Source of the DNA: Andalucia godoyi And28
Lineage: Eukaryota; Protista; Jakobida
DNA length: 64,000 nt
NCBI GenBank assembly: GCA_009859145.1
Contig: VRVR01000005.1
Coordinates: forward strand, 215,448-279,447
Reading direction: 5' to 3'
A model generated the notes under the pieces. That model made no database searches, had not been told where the DNA came from, and saw nothing but the letters and a program-made list of their open reading frames with translations. The translations under genes and the position numbers were made by a program. Positions 1-41,670 of the stretch are shown here, in pieces. How positions within the stretch are numbered: position 1 is the first letter of the stretch; each line of letters opens with the position of its first letter.

Positions 1-132
1 AGTAATTCAGCGTTCCGATTTGCATTTGGAACGATCGAGCCTTTTCCTGTCCAACAGCGCACTGCACATTCGCACACAAGCATCGTTCGTCTTTCAGGAG
101 GAAAACACACACACTATTTCTCACAACGCAAG

Positions 133-1249
133 ATGGCGAATCGTTCCAATTATGAACAGGTCCCTACTCGGGAGCCAGAGGAAGACAGACAGCCGCTTCT
201 TCGTTTCGACGGTACGTGTTCTCGTTGCTCTTGTTCTTGTTCTTGTTCTTGTCTTTGTCATTGCTATTAGTATTGGTATTGTTGATGATGATGGTTGTGG
301 CGGGATTGAGCTTACTTCTTCTTCTTCTTCCTCTTTAATGATTTTTTTTTTTTTTTTGCATTTTACCGCAGATCAAGAACCGGCTGAAGCAACGGTGGAT
401 TCGCGCAGAACACCTGTGCAGCCTCAGGGACCTCCGAACCCTAGCACATACAGTTCTTCGGTGTCCGTTTCTCCCCCTGTCAATACCTCTTCCCCGTCAG
501 TTTCTGCTGCGGCCCCTCCCTATGCACCTGCACAGCAGCAACAGCTGTCTGGTGCAAATGCTGCTGCGTATGGCCAGCCGGCTCAGAATCCTCAGCGGCC
601 ACAGGGCACTTACTATGCCCCGGCGTATCTTTACCAGCCAAATGGGCAACCATACGCCGGACATGCAGTCCCTCTCTACCAACTCCCTACATCGGCGGTC
701 CGAACGAATCCCTACGAAGGTCTCATCGGCCAGCAGCAACAGCAGCAGCAACAGCAACAGCAATTGTATGGTGGTAGTGGTCAACCGTTGATTGGTGGAA
801 TGCCTGTTTTAGGACCCATGTTGCAGCCGATCCAGGGTCTTGGAAATGATTTCCTTTCCGGGGTTTTTGATTGCATGGATGATTCAGAGTCGTGCATGCT
901 CGGTTTGTGCTGCTGGTCTTTGCTGGGAGTTCAGAACTACTCCAGACTGCAAGGACGGCGTGAGCTGGAAGGGAAGGACTGGCTGCTGTGTCTCGGAGTC
1001 ACGGCAATATACTCATTTGTCGGCATACCAATTGCAAACATGGGGCTGGCGTATGCGAATCGTAGACAGATGCGAACGAGCTTTGACTTTCCAAAGGAAG
1101 CTACGGGAATCGAGGATGCAGTAATGGCCGCATGCCTTGGGCCGTGCATTGAATGTCAGATGGCACGCGAATACAAGTATCGAATGGGATTACTGCCGCT
1201 TCCGATTCATGCTGCACCGCTTGCCGCCCCGGCTCGGCCGATGGTGTAG
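133..1249 (+). CDS. PLAC8 (Cys-rich) family protein with Pro/Gln-rich N-terminus; 2 exons (133-211, 372-1249)
   Basis: C-terminal GVFDCMDDSESCMLGLCCW...RRQMR...IEDAVMAACLGPCIECQMARE matches the PLAC8 pattern. GTACGT at 212 to CAG at 371 removes a low-complexity stretch and keeps frame. Confidence 0.8.
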
Positions 1250-1447: not shown

Positions 1448-4400
1448 TTAGAAATCGACGGATTCCAGGAAGGCGCTGGATGCTTGCAAAGCTAGTTTCC
1501 GTTGGCGTTCCTCGTACATTGATCGCAGGGAAACCAAGATTTGGTCCACGCTCATGCGATACATGCCGTTTGCATGCCAATGGCCGTCGACAATGACACC
1601 CTGCTGATTGACAATGTATGTCGCGGTCACGGGTAGTCTCCAGTCTCCTTCGGTACCGTGCGCAATGTCGGGCCTCATTCCAGCAAACGTGTAGATGTCT
1701 CTGGTCTTCGGAGGGCATTCGTACACAAGATTGAACTGGCTAGAAATACCAAACCCCTTATCTTCAACAAGACTGCAGTTTGGATGGTACCAATCGTAGA
1801 AATCAGAGCCACCACAGCTGGTGATAAACAACATTGTTGCCCCATATCCTTGTATGACCGGCATCTGGTCCACAAGGACGCGCATGTTCACATTGCATCC
1901 AGGACACCAGGACCCCCGAAGAAACGTCATGACGACCGGACCAGACGACAACAGGTCTTGCATCGAAATGTGCTTTCCAGTCATTGACACAGCGTTGAAT
2001 AAAGGGATACGGTCGCCTGTTTTCAGAACGTTGCGCTCAATGTCGCATCGAAGCGATTCATGTTCCTCAACGATTTGCTGCAGCTTTTCAACCAATGCGG
2101 TTTCCGGAACACCTTTGGCCTCCGCAAGTTGTCGCACAATTGAAACCAGCGCCTCACCAACTTGCTCTGAAATCGTCCCATACGATTTTGTATCCTGCTT
2201 GCTGAGATCTTCAAGAGTCAATGCAAGCGCACGAGCTTCCCGAGTATCCGCATTCTCTTCCCTCACCTTTGCAAGAAGCTGATTTAGCAGCTGCAGCCCG
2301 AGCTTGGCGTTCCTCTTCTTGGAAATCCACAGCTTTTCAAGTTGGATTAGCGACCGAATTTCATACGAGAGCGCTTCTTCGGACGACGCTAAGTACACGG
2401 CTCGATAGCACACTTCTTCAATCCGTTGTTCGGTTTTAAAGTCCAACGACTGTCCGTTGTTCGCCTCCACTTTTGCCTGCAGTCGCAAAGCTTCAGGCAA
2501 AAGGTCACGCTGGCTGTTCTCGCACGACTCCACGGCTTCTTGGATGAGAGACTGGCACAGCATGCTTCGGCGCTCAGGGGGAAACACACGGTTCACGGAT
2601 TCCAAGGTCGCGTCGGCCGAGCTGCATCCCAACATGCTTTCGACAGCAAGAGTACGCAGAATATTGTCGGGATTCTGAACGCGGCCCAAAAAATCGATCA
2701 TTGATTCAAGATGCACGGGATCCCTGTTGTTCGCAAACTGAGACCACGACAAGAATGCCTGCATTTGCAAAAACAGCTGCGAAAGATGGGCAGGACACTT
2801 GCGCAGCAATTCGGTAGTTGTCTTATACGACAAATCGTATACTTGCTGAACATTATGCTCCAATGCCGCATTATGACACGCCAAGGCCATGTTTGTCGTC
2901 GCCAGCAGCAATGCAAAGTGGGTGGAGGCTCCGACAAACTTCGAATCATGATTCATCTCCACTCTCGAATTCGAATTCGAATTCAGCTCAAGTACGCGCA
3001 CCTCCTCAAGGCAGCGCTTGATCGCATCGGCCTGCATCCGAGAAAACTCGGAAAACGCACTGCGTGCCCATTGAAGGCGACTGCACAGCAGCATCAACTG
3101 GACCATCGGATCCGTGGACGAAAATCGAGTCATCTGATCCTCTTGCTCTTCCAATTCCGCGGAATGAAGCTTATAAATCTCCAGAGCCCGTTCCACATTT
3201 TCGACAACCTGCGATGTTTTTCCAAGCTTGTAATACGAAAGTGCACACGCCAGCAGGGCGTGAATCTTCTCGACTGGATGAACAGCAAACGACAACACAT
3301 TCTCGGCCGCAACATCAAGACTAGTGAAACCTGGAATATCAATCACGTGACGATACGACGCAAGCCACATGCCGTATGCTGTATCATACTGCAACGATCG
3401 GTATGAGGCCATCACATCTGAAGGCAGGGAATCCGAAGACAGGCATTCGTCAACGATTCCTCTGGCGAATGAAAGAACCTCGACAGCACGAACTGCATCC
3501 TCCTTTCGCATCAACATGTTCAGACAACGCGCATACAAAACACATACAGCAGCTGGGCTCACAGCATGCCGCTCCTCGGGAAAAGAAGGAGGAGCCTGCA
3601 CATTGGAGAGCTCCTTTGCACCAAAGCGTTGTATCAATTTCATCAATCGATCAAAGGGACTGCAAGCTCTCGCATAGTCGCCCTTATTCACCAGCAAAAA
3701 TGCTTCATGGGCCAGTGCAACATAGGAATTTTGAGCAATTTCAGCAATTTCCGAAGAGGAGTACATGTTGGTATCAGATATAGACGGGAGTGCGAGAAAC
3801 CAATGGTAGCCACATCGATGGGACGCCTCCAGGTCCGACAGCAACCCGCGGTTCTGCTCCCATAGACATGCAATCTGTCGGTGAATTTTCAACGACTCTG
3901 CCGAGGAGAGAAGCGAGGCAGCGTACTTCTTTGACTCCAGATTACAGAACCTAAACGTAGAGTCTGACATGGACGTATCGGTAAGGATTCCGCGACTGCA
4001 CAGCATGTCGAGCAAGTTTGAGAGTTCCGGTTTCAAGGAGTCTTCCGGGAAGACAAATATCAGTTCATCCAGGGTAAAAGCATCCCACGAACACAGTGCA
4101 GCGATCTTGGCAGTGAGAGCGAGTTCTGGAGAGAGTGCATCCACCAGGGATGCCGAGTCCTTCTCCGCAGATTCCATTACATGATTTCGCAACGCCTCCT
4201 CAAGGATGGAATACTCAACATTCGGAACAAGCGAGCGATTAGCAGCATCGGAAAATGTAGCCAGCCGAGACAAAAGCATCCATTGAACGAGGTGGAAGGA
4301 TGAAACTAGCACACCCTGCGCCTTCCCAAACAACAAGGACACGATTTCTGCTGCGATTTCCGTCGTTTCCAGAAACGCACATCGCAAAAACAGCTGCAAG

Positions 4401-6490
4401 TCGCTTTCGGAGGACGCGTTTCGCAGATAGACCGAGTTAGAAGACGAGACGAAAGGAACATCTAAAGAATCGGATACCAGCACGAACTTTAGCACATGGG
4501 AGCAGCCACAGGCAATGCAGCCAGCAAGGAGCGACCGTGACCAGGAGTCCAAAAACTCGGCCTGCGTAAGCACAATCACAAACGCAGACGGATCGTGTGA
4601 ATTCGAGGCCGACATTGAATGCAACTGCTGCTGTTGCAGTGAACTCAGAATCGATATCCACAGTCTGGCAAGCAATTGAATCTTGCGTTTCTCCGACAGC
4701 ATATCCAATCCCAGCGACGAATTTCCGGACTCCTGTGTGCCAGATGGATGAAGTTCTTCGTTGTCGCAACCGAAAACGGAGCGAAGAAGAATCTTGACAA
4801 GCGGCACTTCACTGGGATCCACTATGGACGACAAGATTTCCCATTTTTGTACAGAGGTCGACTGAGAAAATTCCTGGGATATACACTGTGAAAACCCGTC
4901 TTTGAGGCAGGAATAAGGGACCTGGGTTTCGTATTCGGCACAACGATGAACCAGCAGATTGCATGAAAGCTGCCGCGATGCTTCTGACAATACAGTCACA
5001 GCACATACTGGATCGGGGGACGACAACACAATCACCGCGTCCTTTCCCTCGGGAGATAGTTTAAGCGCAAGGAGACGCATCTCTGCCTCGAAAAACATAG
5101 AAAGACAAGACCGAAGCCGACAACCAGCAGTTTCAGCCGAGTCCTTACGGATGGCTGAGCCGGAAGACAGCAGCCGTGCAACAGCAATTTCACGGGCATG
5201 CCCTTTCACGCAAAATGGTTGGAGAACATCAAAAGTCATGCCATCCTTGGCGGATTCCACAACCGAGCTTAGACAAGAAATGGAACCCGGGCCTGTAATC
5301 TGCATGAGACGCGCGGCAGTTACCACCGAAAACCCAAGAACGGTGACATCCCTGCGCACCTCACTCCCGACAAATCCACAGAACGACTGTCCTCGCGCTG
5401 CGCCGATCGTGACGTCAGCACCAATCTTGTCCCGAATCTCGAGCGCTGCCTTGCAGGATCTCGTCGAGTCATCAGTATGCGTTGTCGGAAATCCAAACAC
5501 AGTCACAATGATGATCCCCTTTTCATCGTTTAAGAGATTGGCGATGAACCCACCATATTTGTAAGTTGCATGCTGCACAGTGGACAAGTGGCCAGCTAAT
5601 GATCGAGGATCATTCGTAAGATTGGGATTAAGTTTGATAAACAGCGTACAGATGCATCTGACAGAAGTAAGAAAGCGCTCAATTCCCTTCTCCACGTGCC
5701 CCACGACGAACGGGTCTACAAATTGTTGCAGCACATCCAACCGCACCGCAATCGGACTGTTCGAGGCAGGAGGGGAGCCAGCTTGCGTTGGGACATTCTG
5801 AACTACGAACTTTGTTTCATCTGAACGGACGGGGGCAGCAGCATATCCTGGGATCTGTTGCACAGCACTCCAAACAGAGGCAGAAACGACAGTTTCACCT
5901 GTCCTACTAACTGCCAGCAAGGACTCCAGGTTTGCGAACACCGACCCACACGTCAACCGCATCCACTTGTTGTCTGCGCCACCGCAGTAAACAAATGTCA
6001 GTGTGCCGCAGTCGACTGCAGAATGCAAGGAAAGTGCGGTGCCTGCTGATGAGTCCTTGCCATTGAAGGTGGCGGACAGATAGTGCGTTGAAGACACGGC
6101 TCCTTCGGCGGTTGGGAAAATGCAGATGAGAGCATCCCCTGCAAAGCGATCCACATAGCCCCCATGAGCCTTGATATTCGCAAGCATCGGCTCGAACATC
6201 GAGTTGACAACTCTTGTGAGCTGCTCGGGAGCTCCAGAGAATCGCTCAGTGAGCTTTGTAAAGCCAGATATGTCCATAATCGAGACAAAATACACGGAAT
6301 CATCGGAAATCACAGTTTCTGATGTCAGAGGCTTATGAATGTGAACGGAGATGTCGGGCTGAATCAAGCCAGCAACGGTAGGCAAGGCGACGAACACCGT
6401 GCCAGTCGTTGCAGCTGATTCAGGCACTTTTTGTTGGCAGTCCTCGACGACCTGCGAAGCAGCCTTCGTTTTGGAAGAACCGCAGCCCAT
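1448..6490 (-). CDS. Soluble-adenylyl-cyclase-like protein: N-acylation motif + tandem class III cyclase domains + degenerate STAND NTPase + TPR-like region + C-terminal peroxiredoxin-like (AhpC/TSA) domain
   Basis: MGCGSSK start. C1 motifs DISGFT and FAGDA; C2 motifs DEKG and RRDVTVLGFSVVTAARLM. STAND winged-helix-like LDALSPELALTAKIAA and FRFCN...LKIHRQIA. C-terminal LKTGDRIP...GPVVMTFLRGSWCPGCN...WRLPVTATYIVNQQG. Single uninterrupted 1680-aa ORF. Confidence 0.85.
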   Translation of the reverse strand: MGCGSSKTKAASQVVEDCQQKVPESAATTGTVFVALPTVAGLIQPDISVHIHKPLTSETVISDDSVYFVSIMDISGFTKLTERFSGAPEQLTRVVNSMFEPMLANIKAHGGYVDRFAGDALICIFPTAEGAVSSTHYLSATFNGKDSSAGTALSLHSAVDCGTLTFVYCGGADNKWMRLTCGSVFANLESLLAVSRTGETVVSASVWSAVQQIPGYAAAPVRSDETKFVVQNVPTQAGSPPASNSPIAVRLDVLQQFVDPFVVGHVEKGIERFLTSVRCICTLFIKLNPNLTNDPRSLAGHLSTVQHATYKYGGFIANLLNDEKGIIIVTVFGFPTTHTDDSTRSCKAALEIRDKIGADVTIGAARGQSFCGFVGSEVRRDVTVLGFSVVTAARLMQITGPGSISCLSSVVESAKDGMTFDVLQPFCVKGHAREIAVARLLSSGSAIRKDSAETAGCRLRSCLSMFFEAEMRLLALKLSPEGKDAVIVLSSPDPVCAVTVLSEASRQLSCNLLVHRCAEYETQVPYSCLKDGFSQCISQEFSQSTSVQKWEILSSIVDPSEVPLVKILLRSVFGCDNEELHPSGTQESGNSSLGLDMLSEKRKIQLLARLWISILSSLQQQQLHSMSASNSHDPSAFVIVLTQAEFLDSWSRSLLAGCIACGCSHVLKFVLVSDSLDVPFVSSSNSVYLRNASSESDLQLFLRCAFLETTEIAAEIVSLLFGKAQGVLVSSFHLVQWMLLSRLATFSDAANRSLVPNVEYSILEEALRNHVMESAEKDSASLVDALSPELALTAKIAALCSWDAFTLDELIFVFPEDSLKPELSNLLDMLCSRGILTDTSMSDSTFRFCNLESKKYAASLLSSAESLKIHRQIACLWEQNRGLLSDLEASHRCGYHWFLALPSISDTNMYSSSEIAEIAQNSYVALAHEAFLLVNKGDYARACSPFDRLMKLIQRFGAKELSNVQAPPSFPEERHAVSPAAVCVLYARCLNMLMRKEDAVRAVEVLSFARGIVDECLSSDSLPSDVMASYRSLQYDTAYGMWLASYRHVIDIPGFTSLDVAAENVLSFAVHPVEKIHALLACALSYYKLGKTSQVVENVERALEIYKLHSAELEEQEDQMTRFSSTDPMVQLMLLCSRLQWARSAFSEFSRMQADAIKRCLEEVRVLELNSNSNSRVEMNHDSKFVGASTHFALLLATTNMALACHNAALEHNVQQVYDLSYKTTTELLRKCPAHLSQLFLQMQAFLSWSQFANNRDPVHLESMIDFLGRVQNPDNILRTLAVESMLGCSSADATLESVNRVFPPERRSMLCQSLIQEAVESCENSQRDLLPEALRLQAKVEANNGQSLDFKTEQRIEEVCYRAVYLASSEEALSYEIRSLIQLEKLWISKKRNAKLGLQLLNQLLAKVREENADTREARALALTLEDLSKQDTKSYGTISEQVGEALVSIVRQLAEAKGVPETALVEKLQQIVEEHESLRCDIERNVLKTGDRIPLFNAVSMTGKHISMQDLLSSGPVVMTFLRGSWCPGCNVNMRVLVDQMPVIQGYGATMLFITSCGGSDFYDWYHPNCSLVEDKGFGISSQFNLVYECPPKTRDIYTFAGMRPDIAHGTEGDWRLPVTATYIVNQQGVIVDGHWHANGMYRMSVDQILVSLRSMYEERQRKLALQASSAFLESVDF

Positions 6491-6914
6491 TGGAAAATCT
6501 TACACGCGCGTACGTGTGTGGGTGCTTTTAACGAGGAAAAAAGAAGAAGAAGAAAAGAAAACCGGGAAAAAACAAACACAGAAGCAACGGACGCCACCGC
6601 GACTGGTCGAGATCAAGAATCAGTTTGAAGGAGCGAAGCTGGCAGGGAAGCGGGAAATGCCGGGTGGACGGTCCAGGCTTGGAAGGCAGCAAAGCGGATT
6701 GCGCCATTGTTTTGACTGTGCATTCGAGAGGAGTGCGGCTTGCGAGAAGAATTCGAAAGCATCTGCTTCGACCGACGACACTGGACCAAACAGGAATGTC
6801 GCAACGCGTCAAATTCTGTACTGGCAGCTGTCGTTCAAATTGCAGTGAGTCCTTTGAGAGTGTCTGCGACTTTGCGTTTCATTCATCGCCGTTATCCAAC
6901 TGTGGTTTCTCTGT

Positions 6915-6916
<2 letters not shown>

Positions 6917-6952
<36 letters not shown>

Positions 6953-6972
6953 ACCACACCACACCACACACA

Positions 6973-7003
<31 letters not shown>

Positions 7004-7015
7004 CCACCACCACCA

Positions 7016-7048
<33 letters not shown>

Positions 7049-7055
7049 ACCACCA

Positions 7056-7097
<42 letters not shown>

Positions 7098-7106
7098 ACA
7101 CACAGA
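6917..7106. repeat. (CA)n/(CAC)n compound microsatellite
   Basis: About 190 bp of CA/CAC repeats read directly from the sequence. Confidence 0.95.
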
Positions 7107-7275
7107 GACAAATGACAAAACCAAAAAAAAAAAAAGCGGGATTTGAATACCAAATGATGACAACGATGGGCGAAACATCTCGTGACTCAAGTAGGGGCCT
7201 TTTTACAGCCGGCAGTGCGTTGTCAGACAACCATTTACACTGAAGGGAAGCACCTCGAAACACAAGGGGGGTTCC

Positions 7276-8538: not shown

Positions 8539-8709
8539 GATGCCCTCCCCTGAGATCGCGGAGTGGGGTGGAGGAGCCCCCCCCCCCAAAAAAAAAAAAA
8601 AAGTAAATAAATAAATATATATATAAAATAATAATAATAATAACAAAACAACATGGAGCAGAAACAGGAGAAGGAGAGGGAGAGGGAGAAAAGAGACGGG
8701 GGCGCTTTA

Positions 8710-10168: not shown

Positions 10169-11926
10169 ATGCAGTTTTCTGGAGAGCTGCAGACTGTGAT
10201 TGACGAGTATGCATCTTTTGATTTTGATCCGGAGACGCAGCGTGAATTGGCAAGGTTGAGGTCCGCTGCAGATGGAGGAGAGGTGCTGAGGCGTGCGTTT
10301 CTTCCTCGCATATCATTTGGGACGGCTGGGCTAAGGGGCCGTATGGGGGCCGGGTATGCAAACATGAACAGTCTTGTTGTGATGCAAACGTCAGAGGGTC
10401 TGGGGCGATATATTTTACACTGTGATCCGTCTGCTGCATCCAAGGGGATTGTGGTTGGATACGATGCGCGACACCGCAGTCGCCGATTTGCCTACATTGC
10501 TTGCCAGGTTTTCAAGCGACTCGGCTTTCGTGTGCTGACTTTCAAGGAATATACATGCACTCCATTCGTTCCGTTTGCCGTGTCGCTCCTGGGACTCAGC
10601 GGTGGAGTGATGGTGACGGCGTCGCACAATCCCAAGGACGACAATGGCTACAAGGTGTACTGGTCCAACGGCGCGCAGATTGTGTCGCCTCATGATGATG
10701 GAATAACAGGAGAAATCATGAAACATCTGCGTCCAGAGTTCATTCCTGACTTGCAGGAGGACTTTTCGCTATTTGAATGCGCTGACGAATTGATCATGCA
10801 AAGCTACATGGACAAGTGCCGTGCGCTCTGCTGTTTCCGTGAGCAAAACGCGTCGTCATCAGGGTTGAAGATTGCATACACCCCAGTGCACGGCGTCGGG
10901 GCGAAGTTTGTGCGAAGGATGTTTCTCGAATTCAACTTGCCAGCATTCGCGGAGACAACGGAGCAGATTGATCCGGACCCGGAGTTTTCAACGGTTGTGT
11001 TCCCGAATCCTGAGGAAGGAAAGACAACAATGTCTCTCGTTACGAAACGAGCGCTTGACAGCGGCTGTCAACTGATTCTCGCGAACGATCCTGATGCTGA
11101 CCGACTAGCTGTTGCCGAGGTTCAGCAGAATGGGACTGTTTACTACTTTAACGGAAACGAAATTGCGCTGCTTTTTGCAGACTATGCTTGGTGTTATCAC
11201 CGAAACGCTGGAGTTGCTCCTGAGAACCACTTTGTTGTTCAGTCGACGGTGTCCTCGAAGGCATTGAAGAGAATGGCGGAAGTCGAGGGATTTCAGTGGT
11301 TTGACACATTGACGGGGTTCAAGAACATTGGGAACAAGGCATTTGAGAAGGTGAATGAGGGCATGAAATTTCTTTTTGCCTTTGAAGTGGAGATCGGATT
11401 CTTGTTGGGAAGTATGTCTTTTGACAAGGACGGCGTTCGCACCTGTGCTTGCATGGCGGAGTACGCAAACAAGCTGTTCCGCGAAGGGAAGAGGTTGTAC
11501 GATAGGCTGCAGGAAATTTACGAGAAATACGGATATTTCAACATGATCGCGTCATATTTTTTCTGCTATGACCCTGTTCGAATGAAATCCATCATTGATG
11601 CTGTGCGAAAACCAAATTACATTTCCCACATTGGAAACGACGAGGTCGTGTGGGTCCGTGATTGCACTGCGGGGTATCAGTCGGATACTGCCGATCACGT
11701 TCCGTCGTTGCCCGTCTCTGCGTCTTCTCAATTTTTGCAGCTCAGACTGGCATCTGGAGTAGAAATCACGCTTCGTGGTTCCGGAACAGAACCAAAACTG
11801 AAATACTACATTGAATCGCGTGGCACCACAATGGCTGAGGCTGCGAAGGCCGCAAAGGAAGTCGAGAAACACTTGATTTCAGAGATCCTTCGTCCGCTTG
11901 AAAACGGTCTTGTTGCACGAGACTAG
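10169..11926 (+). CDS. PGM2: Phosphoglucomutase-2/phosphopentomutase (alpha-D-phosphohexomutase)
   Basis: FGTAGLRG, phospho-Ser loop TASHNP, metal loop NDPDADR, TLTGFK, FAFE, RGSGTEPKLKYY. Confidence 0.92.
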   Translation: MQFSGELQTVIDEYASFDFDPETQRELARLRSAADGGEVLRRAFLPRISFGTAGLRGRMGAGYANMNSLVVMQTSEGLGRYILHCDPSAASKGIVVGYDARHRSRRFAYIACQVFKRLGFRVLTFKEYTCTPFVPFAVSLLGLSGGVMVTASHNPKDDNGYKVYWSNGAQIVSPHDDGITGEIMKHLRPEFIPDLQEDFSLFECADELIMQSYMDKCRALCCFREQNASSSGLKIAYTPVHGVGAKFVRRMFLEFNLPAFAETTEQIDPDPEFSTVVFPNPEEGKTTMSLVTKRALDSGCQLILANDPDADRLAVAEVQQNGTVYYFNGNEIALLFADYAWCYHRNAGVAPENHFVVQSTVSSKALKRMAEVEGFQWFDTLTGFKNIGNKAFEKVNEGMKFLFAFEVEIGFLLGSMSFDKDGVRTCACMAEYANKLFREGKRLYDRLQEIYEKYGYFNMIASYFFCYDPVRMKSIIDAVRKPNYISHIGNDEVVWVRDCTAGYQSDTADHVPSLPVSASSQFLQLRLASGVEITLRGSGTEPKLKYYIESRGTTMAEAAKAAKEVEKHLISEILRPLENGLVARD

Positions 11927-38496: not shown

Positions 38497-41400
38497 TCAT
38501 GATGCGGGTTTCGGTTCTCGAGGCTCGCGTGCAAGAGATAACTCATACAAGGCATTATCCGTTGGTCCGTCTGCATCTGCGAGCAGAGCGGACAGATCAT
38601 TCATCATGATGCACTTGTATGGCGTCTGTTGGTACGTCTGGATCTCACGTATCACCTGCGCAATCAAGCGGCATTTTGAAAAGTTGACCATGTTTTCACG
38701 AACCATGTTCTTGTTCCCTTCATCAATGAACGTCAGATCCGTCAGGTACATTCCAAGATACGGAACACATGGTGGGTTCGCATTGTGCAACGCATCTCGA
38801 AGAGACTTGTAAGACGATTCACGAGAAACCAGCTGTTCCAGCTTCATAAACAACGAGCTGGATTTCGAAGGCAACTCCTCGCGAGTGCGCTTCAACCGAT
38901 GAACGGCTGCATTGTTGAGTGCTGCAACGACAACCAGAACGGCATTGAAATTATTCAGCTTCCGACATTCTTCTGCGACAGACAAGACTTTGGAATATGC
39001 AGTGCGCCGATCCCTGATGTCTTCGTGCCGAAGAATCGAAAATGCAATCCAGCGACAGGTGCGATTGAAGCGATCCGTCACGCGAAGAATACACGGCGCA
39101 ATTTCATCGCGATTCGACTTCATCCAAGCCTGTCCGAGAAACTCTTTCGGTGGGATCGAGCAAAACGCGGCAAAGTCCAGCAATGTGAGTTGCTTTGCAA
39201 TGTCTGACGCCGGCCAATCCATAATGTCCATGGTTCGCGCAGGAAGGGGAGGGAAACCATCCGCAAGCAAAGAAGAGCCCATGTTCGTAGTTAGCTCGTC
39301 AATCGCAGAGATCGTTGCATCCGCCACCGCGATAGCTTCTGCCTGTGCGTTCCCATCAACACTTGACCGAACGACTTGATGATCCTTGAAGACGGATAAG
39401 TGACCGTGTTCCGCCAAAAACTTTCTTTCCTTCACGTCCTCCATTGCTTTTTCGACAGAGCGTCGAAGAGACTCTCCTGCCGCTTTCATGTCCACACCGA
39501 TCACCATGTTAGAAAAAGACCAGATCGACGGTAGCAGTTGTGCATTGTCCACAAAGTCAAAGATGTAGTCTTCGACCCACGTTTTGAGAACTTGGCAAAC
39601 CCGCAGACGGATGGGCAACAATCGATGCTTGCGGAAACGTCCAAACAAAATACGGTCATTGGAAACCGCACGGCTACCAAGTCCTGCACGTGGAATTGAC
39701 TGAAACCTGCGTACAAGCAGTTCAAATAGTTGTTTTGGAGACATGAAACTGCGATATGTCAAGAGAAAAGCAAACAAGGAGTCCGAGTCAAAATCCATAT
39801 GGGCTGTAAGGCGTCGTAGAATACCCTCTACTGTCCCCGCTTTGATGAGATGTCGATTCGTTTTGACATCAAAGGCCACGTCGACATCTGGATTCGATCG
39901 ATCCTCCAACGGCAGAGCAGCAAACGGAGACCATTCCGGATCATAGTATTTTCCATAGTCTTCTTCTACTTCCTCTGCTGCGCTTGCAGAGGGCGCAAAT
40001 ACCACCGCATCCAGATCCAATTCCTTCACACAAGACTTTTGCAGAAGAGCCTCGAAAATTTCTCGAGCAATGCCAACTTTCTCGCAAAAGAGCATATCCA
40101 AATACACAGGAGAAGAAATTTCCCTAGACGCTGTCGCGAGATACGATTTTGAAACTTTTGAGAATTCGACAATCGCTTCAAGAACTGGCTGGGCAGGCGC
40201 AAGCCAGTTCATCTCTGGAGCACCAAAACAACCACCAGTCAATGGCGTGAGGCAGACTCGCTCAAATTCCAAGCGAGCGCATTCCTCCAAGCAAGCCTTG
40301 ACAGCACACTTGACGCTGATCTTGCACGAAGCGTCGCCAGTCCACGAAGGAGGGCCTATTGCAAACAAAACACTGCGAAACGGAATGTCCAATCCGGCAG
40401 CCATCCGTATCGTCACACAGCCGCCCACAGCTGCGGGTCCATTTTGTACAACGTAACTATGACAGAGGTCTTTGACAAAAGGGAACCGGTCGGCAAACTT
40501 CCTCGAAGGCTCAAACGTGCATGCCAAAGAAGGAATGTTGGGAACGATAATTGCGTCAACCGGTTCTTTGCAGACGTCTCCGTCCAACATCATCAGGCGA
40601 TGCAAATTCGCATACTCGAAACACCGAAGCAATCTATTTCGCAAAGGACCACGAACATTCTCGACCGCTGCGTTTGAGGACGCTGCGTTCATTGATTCGA
40701 TTGCTGAGTCTTCCCGGACGAGCATGGGCCGGTCCGACGGTGCCCGTTTTGGCTCCGCATCTCTCGGTGATGACGGCAATACACTCCCTGCACTGTTCAA
40801 GTTGACCAGTGCGTTGCTACCGACCGTCGGGAGAGAGGTCTGTGCTCTATTCCGTGACAGTGGGCCTTGTTGGCCTCCATGAACACCAACGCTGTCCCTG
40901 TTTCCAGAAATCGTCCTCTGCACTACTGGGGGACGGCTGGTCGAAGAAGCAGACGAATCCTTTTCCGAAAATAAAGCTCTCATCTGCGCAACAGTATGTC
41001 TTGGCGCCGCAACATGTGTGTCCATTGTGTGTTGCTGCTCTGCCAGAGCCATTACTTGCATGATTTCAGGGCTGATGACCGTCGACGGCGCATCCGCTGC
41101 TACCGGAACTGCACTGGCAGCTACAACTGTCGAAGAGGAAGACGCAGAGGACGACGACGAGTGAGACGGAGATGACACTGACGGTATCCACAACGCATTC
41201 TCTTCCTGAATACTTCCCGTTGGAGAAACAGACAAGAGCTGGTCATCCTCAATAATATTGAAAACCGTAAGATTCGCAGGCGTGAACAACTTTGCAATAT
41301 CTACTGGCTCCGTCTGGCATTGCAGGGCAGGAGCACTGCGGGATTGGGAATCCGCCGAATTTTTCCGAGTTGTCGGCGCGCTATTTGAAGGTGACGAAGA

Positions 41401-41670
41401 TGGGTTCCGCTTCGGTGCATCCGCGGCTTGAGAAGAGACACCAGTAGACGCTCCAGGTGCCGGCTGCACAGCAGTGCTGGTCTGTGAGATCTTTGCATTT
41501 TCGGCACCTGCGTGTGACTGCGCAGAACGTACGAAAGAAACCGATTTAGGTTGGAGTACAACCGTAGATTGGATGACTGAAGAGGACAACTCGGCGTTTC
41601 GAGCGGCTTGAAGAGCAAGCTGAAACCGAAGCTTGGAGCGGTTCGGATCGCTCCAGTCCGGATCCTCCAT
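38497..41670 (-). CDS. Macro domain + REM + CDC25-type RasGEF
   Basis: Macro: LDGDVCKEPVDAIIVP...VLFAIGP...CLTPLTGGCFG. REM: IKAGTVEGILRRL, FLLTYRSF, RLRVCQVLKTWV. GEF: IAKQLTLLDF, NNFN, PPCVPYLGMYLTDLTFIDEGN, VNFSK. Confidence 0.88.
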   Translation of the reverse strand: MEDPDWSDPNRSKLRFQLALQAARNAELSSSVIQSTVVLQPKSVSFVRSAQSHAGAENAKISQTSTAVQPAPGASTGVSSQAADAPKRNPSSSPSNSAPTTRKNSADSQSRSAPALQCQTEPVDIAKLFTPANLTVFNIIEDDQLLSVSPTGSIQEENALWIPSVSSPSHSSSSSASSSSTVVAASAVPVAADAPSTVISPEIMQVMALAEQQHTMDTHVAAPRHTVAQMRALFSEKDSSASSTSRPPVVQRTISGNRDSVGVHGGQQGPLSRNRAQTSLPTVGSNALVNLNSAGSVLPSSPRDAEPKRAPSDRPMLVREDSAIESMNAASSNAAVENVRGPLRNRLLRCFEYANLHRLMMLDGDVCKEPVDAIIVPNIPSLACTFEPSRKFADRFPFVKDLCHSYVVQNGPAAVGGCVTIRMAAGLDIPFRSVLFAIGPPSWTGDASCKISVKCAVKACLEECARLEFERVCLTPLTGGCFGAPEMNWLAPAQPVLEAIVEFSKVSKSYLATASREISSPVYLDMLFCEKVGIAREIFEALLQKSCVKELDLDAVVFAPSASAAEEVEEDYGKYYDPEWSPFAALPLEDRSNPDVDVAFDVKTNRHLIKAGTVEGILRRLTAHMDFDSDSLFAFLLTYRSFMSPKQLFELLVRRFQSIPRAGLGSRAVSNDRILFGRFRKHRLLPIRLRVCQVLKTWVEDYIFDFVDNAQLLPSIWSFSNMVIGVDMKAAGESLRRSVEKAMEDVKERKFLAEHGHLSVFKDHQVVRSSVDGNAQAEAIAVADATISAIDELTTNMGSSLLADGFPPLPARTMDIMDWPASDIAKQLTLLDFAAFCSIPPKEFLGQAWMKSNRDEIAPCILRVTDRFNRTCRWIAFSILRHEDIRDRRTAYSKVLSVAEECRKLNNFNAVLVVVAALNNAAVHRLKRTREELPSKSSSLFMKLEQLVSRESSYKSLRDALHNANPPCVPYLGMYLTDLTFIDEGNKNMVRENMVNFSKCRLIAQVIREIQTYQQTPYKCIMMNDLSALLADADGPTDNALYELSLAREPREPKPAS

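Follow-up and report, generated by a model that had tools for sequence, protein, structure and literature searches.

A soluble adenylyl cyclase-type protein of Andalucia godoyi ending in a bacterial-type CxxC domain: a candidate redox-controlled cyclic-nucleotide switch

Textbooks present soluble adenylyl cyclase (sAC, ADCY10) as the model of direct sensing of a small metabolite by a cyclase, namely bicarbonate, or pH in some animals; to our knowledge, the role of its large C-terminal STAND/TPR half is still poorly understood. Class III cyclases occur fused to many sensor domains, so that a new fusion partner would not be shocking in itself. Here we describe a relative of sAC with such a partner, encoded in a 64,000-nucleotide stretch of DNA (the window) from the jakobid Andalucia godoyi And28 (assembly GCA_009859145.1, contig VRVR01000005.1, positions 215,448 to 279,447). 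An earlier note on this DNA had proposed that a single gene joins an acylation signal, a pair of cyclase domains, a STAND-TPR region and a peroxiredoxin-like domain, and we found all these elements in one open reading frame (ORF). The gene occupies positions 1448..6490 of the window on the (-) strand, is intron-less and encodes 1680 amino acids (aa) plus a stop codon. From its N-terminus the protein carries an MG(C) signal, the cyclase domains C1 and C2, a STAND module, a TPR-like solenoid, a thioredoxin-fold domain with a CxxC motif and a C-terminal helix, and this order is that of a whole family of fused proteins. We put forward this protein as a candidate redox-controlled cyclic-nucleotide switch, with the CxxC tail as input and the C1-C2 pair as output, a reading that its sequence makes plausible without making it probable.

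In a scan of representatives (1.84 billion proteins) with aa 481-1680 as query, only five matches reached E≤1e-30, and hence the architecture is rare, not common. Four further proteins, all of them environmental sequences, share the full layout: P0002 (1507 aa, JGI, contig L001 cut at its 5' end, GC content 0.49), P0003 (1610 aa as called, Logan, L002, GC 0.60), P0346 (1663 aa, JGI, L003, GC 0.51) and P0477 (1536 aa, JGI, L004, GC 0.33). Full-text literature searches retrieved no paper describing a cyclase-peroxiredoxin fusion and none on the sample accessions of the environmental sequences, and the sole record of it is an automatic JGI label on P0002; this agrees with the earlier note, whose author did not recognise the fusion as described. 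Identity to the 1680-aa protein in P0002, P0003, P0346 and P0477 amounts to 70, 40, 35 and 32% in the CxxC domain and to 58, 39, 41 and 30% in C2, and is lowest in the NTPase-like region (28, 23, 18 and 21%). By these alignments conservation among the fused proteins peaks in the CxxC domain, with C2 similar, and the high value for the CxxC domain speaks for the redox-switch reading.

Since the tail is closest to bacterial proteins, an artefact has to be considered, in which misassembly or a wrong gene model would have fused a cyclase with a bacterial peroxiredoxin-like gene that lies next to it or comes from contamination. This is scarcely credible, given that the reading frame runs over 5043 bases without a stop or frame change, that GC content is even along the gene (~0.50), and that the same junction, with homologous linker helices, is found on four independent contigs from other samples, two of which (L001 and L004) hold little besides the fused gene and resemble transcript assemblies. 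For practical purposes the uninterrupted ORF, the even GC and the four contigs exclude misassembly as well as a chimeric gene model. Moreover, an in-frame TAA lies four codons 5' of the ATG, so the N-terminus cannot be extended, and the exact 1680-aa sequence is present in EukProt, the only collection in which an exact look-up recovered it. The ORF is a true, single gene, and the eukaryote that carries it has few introns.

The terminal domain, placed by the earlier note at about 2030-1520, is a thioredoxin-fold AhpC/TSA 'peroxiredoxin-like' domain that covers aa ~1488-1647 (1550..2029, (-) strand) according to Pfam, profile search and structural model. It contains the CxxC motif Cys1529-Pro-Gly-Cys1532 (WCPGC; 1895..1906, (-)) and is followed by a family-specific C-terminal helix, aa ~1648-1680 (1451..1549, (-)), delimited by alignment and model. 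Pfam AhpC-TSA (PF00578) matches aa 1492-1634 with 32.4 bits (cut-off 26). The protein was modelled as two separate pieces, aa 1-480 and aa 481-1680; the tail is modelled with a predicted local distance difference test score (pLDDT) of ~90, and its last 190 residues match BCP/AhpE-type peroxiredoxins with a target-normalised template-modelling score (TM) of up to 0.86. The helix that starts one residue after Cys1529 in the model has the geometry of thioredoxin folds. Both Cys residues are invariant in the five fused proteins and kept in at least 90% of 20 aligned family members, while the residues between them vary (PG, PA, FH, MH or KF in the fused family; mostly PY or PF in bacteria). The C-terminal helix carries a conserved HEE(K/R)Q(R)KL, absent from the standalone bacterial relatives, and may be a docking or dimerisation element.

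A profile search related the tail to NCBI entries named 'peroxiredoxin-like family protein' (E 1e-31 to 1e-23, 28-35% identity over ~85% of the domain), with which it has in common the motifs GPVV-F-RG-WCPxCN and GDWRLP-PATFII and a terminal invariant Arg. The assignment to a bacterial PRX_like2-type CxxC family, which we take to be CDD cd02970, is thereby borne out. All named nearest relatives among the top matches are bacterial, standalone proteins, and in a rough neighbor-joining tree of CxxC domains the eukaryotic ones nest inside the bacterial family; the suggestion that the redox module was possibly acquired from bacteria is consistent with both. In the same tree the 1680-aa protein, P0002, P0003 and P0346 form an exclusive clade, and P0477 is not placed with them. 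Whether the fusion arose once or twice is beyond the resolution of so rough a tree. A single event is favoured by the homology of P0477 to the 1680-aa protein well upstream of the CxxC domain. Within the bacterial family itself, P0347 (431 aa) consists of two tandem PRX_like2-type CxxC domains and several other matches of 400-580 aa contain two stretches that align, so the domain is commonly duplicated there.

At the opposite end, the first residues MGCGSSK (6470..6490, (-)) form a predicted signal for N-myristoylation at Gly2 and S-palmitoylation at Cys3, with lipidation deduced from the motif. They have the SH4-like traits of a Met-Gly start, Ser/Thr at position 6 and Cys at position 3, and MG(C) opens every complete N-terminus of the fused family: MGCGSSKS in P0003 after extension, MGCKSSKS in P0346 and MGNSC in P0477. 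The persistence of MGC(G/K)SSKS in orthologues of only 30-37% identity makes the dual-acylation motif credible, and the proposed myristoylation plus palmitoylation stands as a prediction. The public gene call of P0003 (L002 444-617) begins 57 codons late, at a non-ATG codon taken as Met, and the in-frame MGCGSSKS lies upstream; such a missed start is expected if a bacterial-type gene caller was used.

Next comes the cyclase core, with C1 at aa ~58-232 (5795..6319, (-); human sAC matches, alignment and model) and C2 at aa ~251-443 (5162..5740, (-); the same evidence and Pfam). Pfam Guanylate_cyc recognises two stretches of the protein (26.4 bits, cut-off 21.9), and human sAC chains from the PDB match both domains with E ~1e-15. 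The AlphaFold model of aa 1-480 (pLDDT 86, predicted TM 0.83) superposes on ~24 human sAC structures over 460-480 columns, with E down to 1e-31 and TM 0.73-0.77. As far as this model goes, the core is a sAC-type tandem C1-C2, that is, two class III folds in one chain (pseudo-heterodimer), and the two class III domains of sAC affinity that had been noticed from the letters hold good. Residue roles for the metal-binding Asp, substrate pair, transition state and bicarbonate site were taken from work on sAC (PMC12250328, PMC4886424). Asp73 and Asp119 in C1 correspond to the metal-binding Asp47 and Asp99 of sAC, and, in C2, Thr383 to Thr405 of the substrate-specifying pair and Arg394 to the transition-state Arg416; all four are kept. 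The bicarbonate residues Lys95 and Arg176 are replaced by Arg115 and Glu189, residues also found in P0002 and P0003, so control by bicarbonate of the mammalian type is not expected.

Between core and tail lies the counterpart of the sensor arm of STAND proteins. It begins with a STAND NTPase-like domain with degenerate motifs (aa ~470-720; 4331..5083, (-); alignment and model) and continues with the helical/winged-helix part of the STAND module (aa ~721-880; 3851..4330, (-)), where LVDALSPELALTAKIAAL aligns to RIDRLTPQQQLTLKVASVIG of relatives and the model agrees. A TPR-like alpha-solenoid with linker helices follows (aa ~881-1487; 2030..3850, (-)), all-helical in the model and assigned with Foldseek. 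For the model of aa 481-1680 (pLDDT 79), the best Foldseek matches were the STAND-TPR protein 6mfv, MalT (8bob), CED-4 and the TPR solenoids of Ctr9 and TTC7B. The STAND part aligned collinearly with P0004, P0005, P0008, P0012, P0013, P0021 and mammalian sAC, and collinearity with the cyclase-STAND relatives spans the NTPase, the helical/winged-helix segment and an HW motif at the opening of the solenoid.

The nucleotide-binding motifs of this module are gone. The P-loop, GEAGIGKS in relatives, reads SSPDPVCA, and Walker B, hhhhDDAHWLD in relatives, reads VIVLTQAEFLD. The Pfam scan of the 1680-aa protein gave no AAA_16 match, whereas P0477, P0021 and P0004 do have one, and P0477 also has an intact P-loop (GEAGIGKT). 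With P-loop and Walker B lost, the domain is best described as a STAND NTPase without a nucleotide switch. Of the STAND-like region first proposed, then, the fold stands, by collinear alignment and by the matches to 6mfv, MalT and CED-4, and the Walker A and Walker B motifs do not. The TPR-like region fares similarly: it is an all-helical solenoid in the model that matches 6mfv, MalT, Ctr9 and TTC7B, but no TPR family was matched at E≤1 in the Pfam scan, so the resemblance does not extend to sequence repeats.

Taken as a switch, the protein could work as follows. Myristoylated at Gly2 and palmitoylated at Cys3, it would sit on the cytosolic face of a membrane, and the CxxC domain at the tip of the STAND-type sensor arm would be the input module. 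This domain is the best candidate for that part because it is distal on the arm, the most constrained and accompanied by a family-specific C-terminal helix. When Cys1529 and Cys1532 are oxidised, whether by bonding to each other or through a mixed disulfide with a partner or lipid peroxide, the conformation of domain and helix might change, which in turn might alter the restraint of the solenoid on C1-C2, and cyclic-nucleotide output would then track the local thiol redox state. The STAND NTPase of this lineage would have lost nucleotide binding and serve as a rigid scaffold only, while the distant member P0477 keeps an intact P-loop. With its non-canonical centre (Asn318, Val390), the output may be weak, or not strictly cyclic AMP.

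Several points weigh against redox control and are best taken from the tail to the catalytic centre. The CxxC domain and the cyclase were modelled separately, so that any contact or communication between them is hypothetical, and we know of no established biochemical function for PRX_like2-type proteins in bacteria. Aligned to BCP, Cys1532 falls on the position of the peroxidatic Cys, but Cys1529 replaces the catalytic Thr/Ser, the Pro of the PxxxT/SxxC motif of peroxiredoxins has become Arg (RGSWCPGC) and the position of the catalytic Arg holds Thr or Pro. The absence of the peroxiredoxin Thr and Arg makes direct reactivity with peroxide doubtful, and for the same reason we call the tail CxxC oxidoreductase-like rather than a proven peroxidase. 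The term peroxiredoxin-like is therefore adequate for the AhpC/TSA thioredoxin fold and the placement of one Cys, not for the catalytic residues around it. Judged by these residues, the case for peroxide sensing by the tail is no stronger than that for thiol-disulfide chemistry in general.

The domain could also be an enzyme in its own right: a reductase of thiol-disulfides or (lipid) peroxides, held at the membrane and comparable to PRXL2B/prostamide-PGF synthase, independent of or downstream of the cyclase and not its sensor. In this sense, it is full-length and well conserved, with the enzyme-like family motifs GPVV-F-RG-WCPxCN and GDWRLP and the final Arg; for peroxiredoxin-like CxxC proteins, reduction of a lipid endoperoxide is on record (PMC12938796), and an acyl anchor would put the domain beside lipid substrates. 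However, each of the five members has the domain joined to the cyclase-STAND-solenoid, invariably at the sensor end, which speaks for regulatory coupling, and the kinship to mammalian PRXL2 is putative, Pfam PF13911 being matched by only some of the bacterial relatives of the tail. We regard such a bifunctional tethered enzyme as rather unlikely.

Another point that counts against thiol redox sensing is the segment LPVTATY (aa 1620-1626, at ~1610-1630 of the window), where the cis-Pro of the thioredoxin fold has given way to Thr in the 1680-aa protein and P0002, a change that could bring altered redox or metal-binding behaviour. Work cited in the reference list of PMC12938796 indicates that cis-Pro precludes metal binding in thioredoxins. 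Without this Pro, a metal or an Fe-S cluster might be bound by the thiolates of the CxxC motif, and the module would sense metal or oxygen and not thiol redox. Nevertheless, the other three fused members keep the Pro, as (I/L/Y)PAT(F/Y), and so do most bacterial relatives, the bacterial relative P0344 also has Thr, and no additional Cys or His residues are arranged as ligands, all of which renders a metal or Fe-S module very improbable.

The redox-switch reading meets its other difficulty in the catalytic centre. Val390 occupies the position of the transition-state Asn412 of sAC, where 90 of ~95 aligned relatives have Asn and only three have Val (the 1680-aa protein, its closest orthologue P0002, and P0094). 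The adenine-binding Lys334 of sAC corresponds to Asn318, and Asn is found there in all five family members; this position is variable across 100 homologues (K 51, Q 21, R 9, N 5). Both substitutions leave the cyclase activity and the substrate of the 1680-aa protein uncertain. It is conceivable that in this protein and P0002 both the cyclase (Asn to Val, Lys to Asn) and the NTPase (loss of the P-loop) are dead, and that they act as a membrane scaffold or nucleotide-binding regulator in which CxxC is the sole reactive part. The rarity of Val, the obliterated P-loop and Walker B and the low Pfam cyclase scores (26 bits here, below the cut-off in P0346) would fit a pseudo-cyclase of this kind. 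Still, the two metal Asp, Thr383 and Arg394 are conserved together with the motifs that surround them, C2 is 58% identical to that of P0002 against a protein average of 42%, and P0003, P0346 and P0477 retain the catalytic Asn. Furthermore, the transition-state Asn is missing in some active class III cyclases, e.g. Rv1900c (PMC4886424). A pseudo-cyclase scaffold is in our view distinctly unlikely, and cyclase activity of the 1680-aa protein, as far as its residues tell, is doubtful but conceivable.

If redox control is true, thiol redox would join the direct inputs of class III cyclases, and eukaryotic signalling would have taken a domain of bacterial origin into one of its proteins. It could even be the first eukaryotic class III cyclase with a built-in dithiol redox sensor: a lipid-anchored, sAC-derived protein in which the CxxC domain, of bacterial descent, would detect oxidants close to the membrane, perhaps lipid peroxides, and turn them directly into a cyclic-nucleotide signal; part of the family would dispense with the STAND nucleotide switch in doing so. 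This fuller proposal we hold to be somewhat doubtful. If redox control is not confirmed, what we describe is simply an uncommon assembly of domains from a sparsely sampled lineage. The decay of the NTPase next to a conserved cyclase core and CxxC domain amounts to a natural experiment on the role of the arm and on signalling from its tip to the catalytic pair, and the conserved acyl anchor and CxxC tail together with the decayed NTPase make a clean, testable system.

The genes around the fusion are eukaryotic and encode proteins such as PLAC8, NAD-epimerase, phosphoglucomutase, LTV1, amidase, PP2C, protein kinase, RasGEF, cyclin and CENP-H. Those supported by Pfam lie on alternating strands of the window as long, apparently intron-free ORFs; Rfam and tRNA scans of the window gave no match. 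The phosphoglucomutase gene (10169-11926) has 42-46% identity to its best named matches, which are fungal (Mucoromycota), amoebozoan and holozoan. Its second-best match (P0107, E 1.5e-174), labelled 'LOW QUALITY PROTEIN', is assigned to the moth Ostrinia furnacalis and lies on a contig of 33 kb, which probably entered the moth assembly as contamination by a relative of this protist. Upstream of the 1680-aa gene lies a long imperfect (TG)n/(GGT)n microsatellite (6930-7110), and homopyrimidine/homopurine tracts are found on both sides of the gene (also ~6545-6600, 1320-1385 and 8560-8640); they recur in other intergenic regions and may be the promoter or terminator context of this organism. Polypyrimidine tracts and (TG)n repeats could point to a kinetoplastid, a reading contradicted by the alternating strands of the Pfam-supported genes, by the occurrence of RasGEF and CENP-H and by the lack of close trypanosomatid matches. 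Two neighbours deserve mention. The RasGEF protein at 38497-41670 (-), with RasGEF_N and RasGEF domains, weakly resembles the Macro domain at aa 402-485, with a score slightly below the Pfam cut-off, and RasGEF plus Macro in one protein would be an unusual pairing, if real. The PLAC8-family protein at 20-1249 (+) has a long, Pro/Gln-rich N-terminal half with poly-Q; its ORF as shown opens at TTG, and the true start is probably further inside.

Among known systems, full-length mammalian sAC has the same succession of C1-C2, STAND NTPase and helical/TPR region, and its structures 4clf, 4usu and 8co7 are matched by the core model (TM 0.73-0.77). It differs in having neither an N-terminal acylation signal nor a C-terminal thioredoxin-fold domain. 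In addition, it retains the P-loop (GYGKS), Walker B (IIDEAQFVD), Lys334, Asn412, Lys95 and Arg176, which are lost or changed in the 1680-aa protein, and identity between the two is only ~24% over ~20% of the length. The best matches outside the family are bacterial cyclase-STAND-TPR proteins with AAA_16 and MalT-like TPR (P0004 and P0005, Chloroflexota; E 1e-45 to 1e-30, 24-30% identity). This type is collinear with the 1680-aa protein through cyclase, NTPase, winged helix and solenoid, but has canonical catalytic residues (D, D, K, T, N, R), intact Walker motifs and no acylation signal, and none of these bacterial proteins carries a C-terminal CxxC domain. By homology, the 1680-aa protein is thus a member of the sAC-type cyclase-STAND-TPR proteins without the Asn, the bicarbonate residues, the Walker motifs and the sequence-level TPRs.

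For the tail, the nearest comparison is with the bacterial 'peroxiredoxin-like family protein' of ~200-250 aa, which also has its second CxxC Cys at the position of the peroxidatic Cys. It occurs as a single domain or in tandem, as in P0347, and the fused family adds the C-terminal helix to it. The closest solved folds are PrxQ/BCP peroxiredoxins (2cx3, 3hjp, 5epf; profile E 3e-24), in which PxxxT/SxxC stands against RGSWCPGC in the tail, with Cys at the Thr/Ser and Arg at the Pro. Finally, the bacterial metagenomic protein P0021 combines, like the 1680-aa protein, a peroxiredoxin-superfamily domain with a class III cyclase-STAND. Here, however, the domain is N-terminal and of genuine BCP/PrxQ type (PRDETAVCVAQAC, 117 bits to AhpC-TSA), and cyclase and NTPase are canonical, so P0021 is an independent fusion and not an orthologue. 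Judged by its domain order and motifs, it is an independent recurrence of the peroxiredoxin-cyclase pairing, which counts in favour of the redox-switch reading of the A. godoyi protein.

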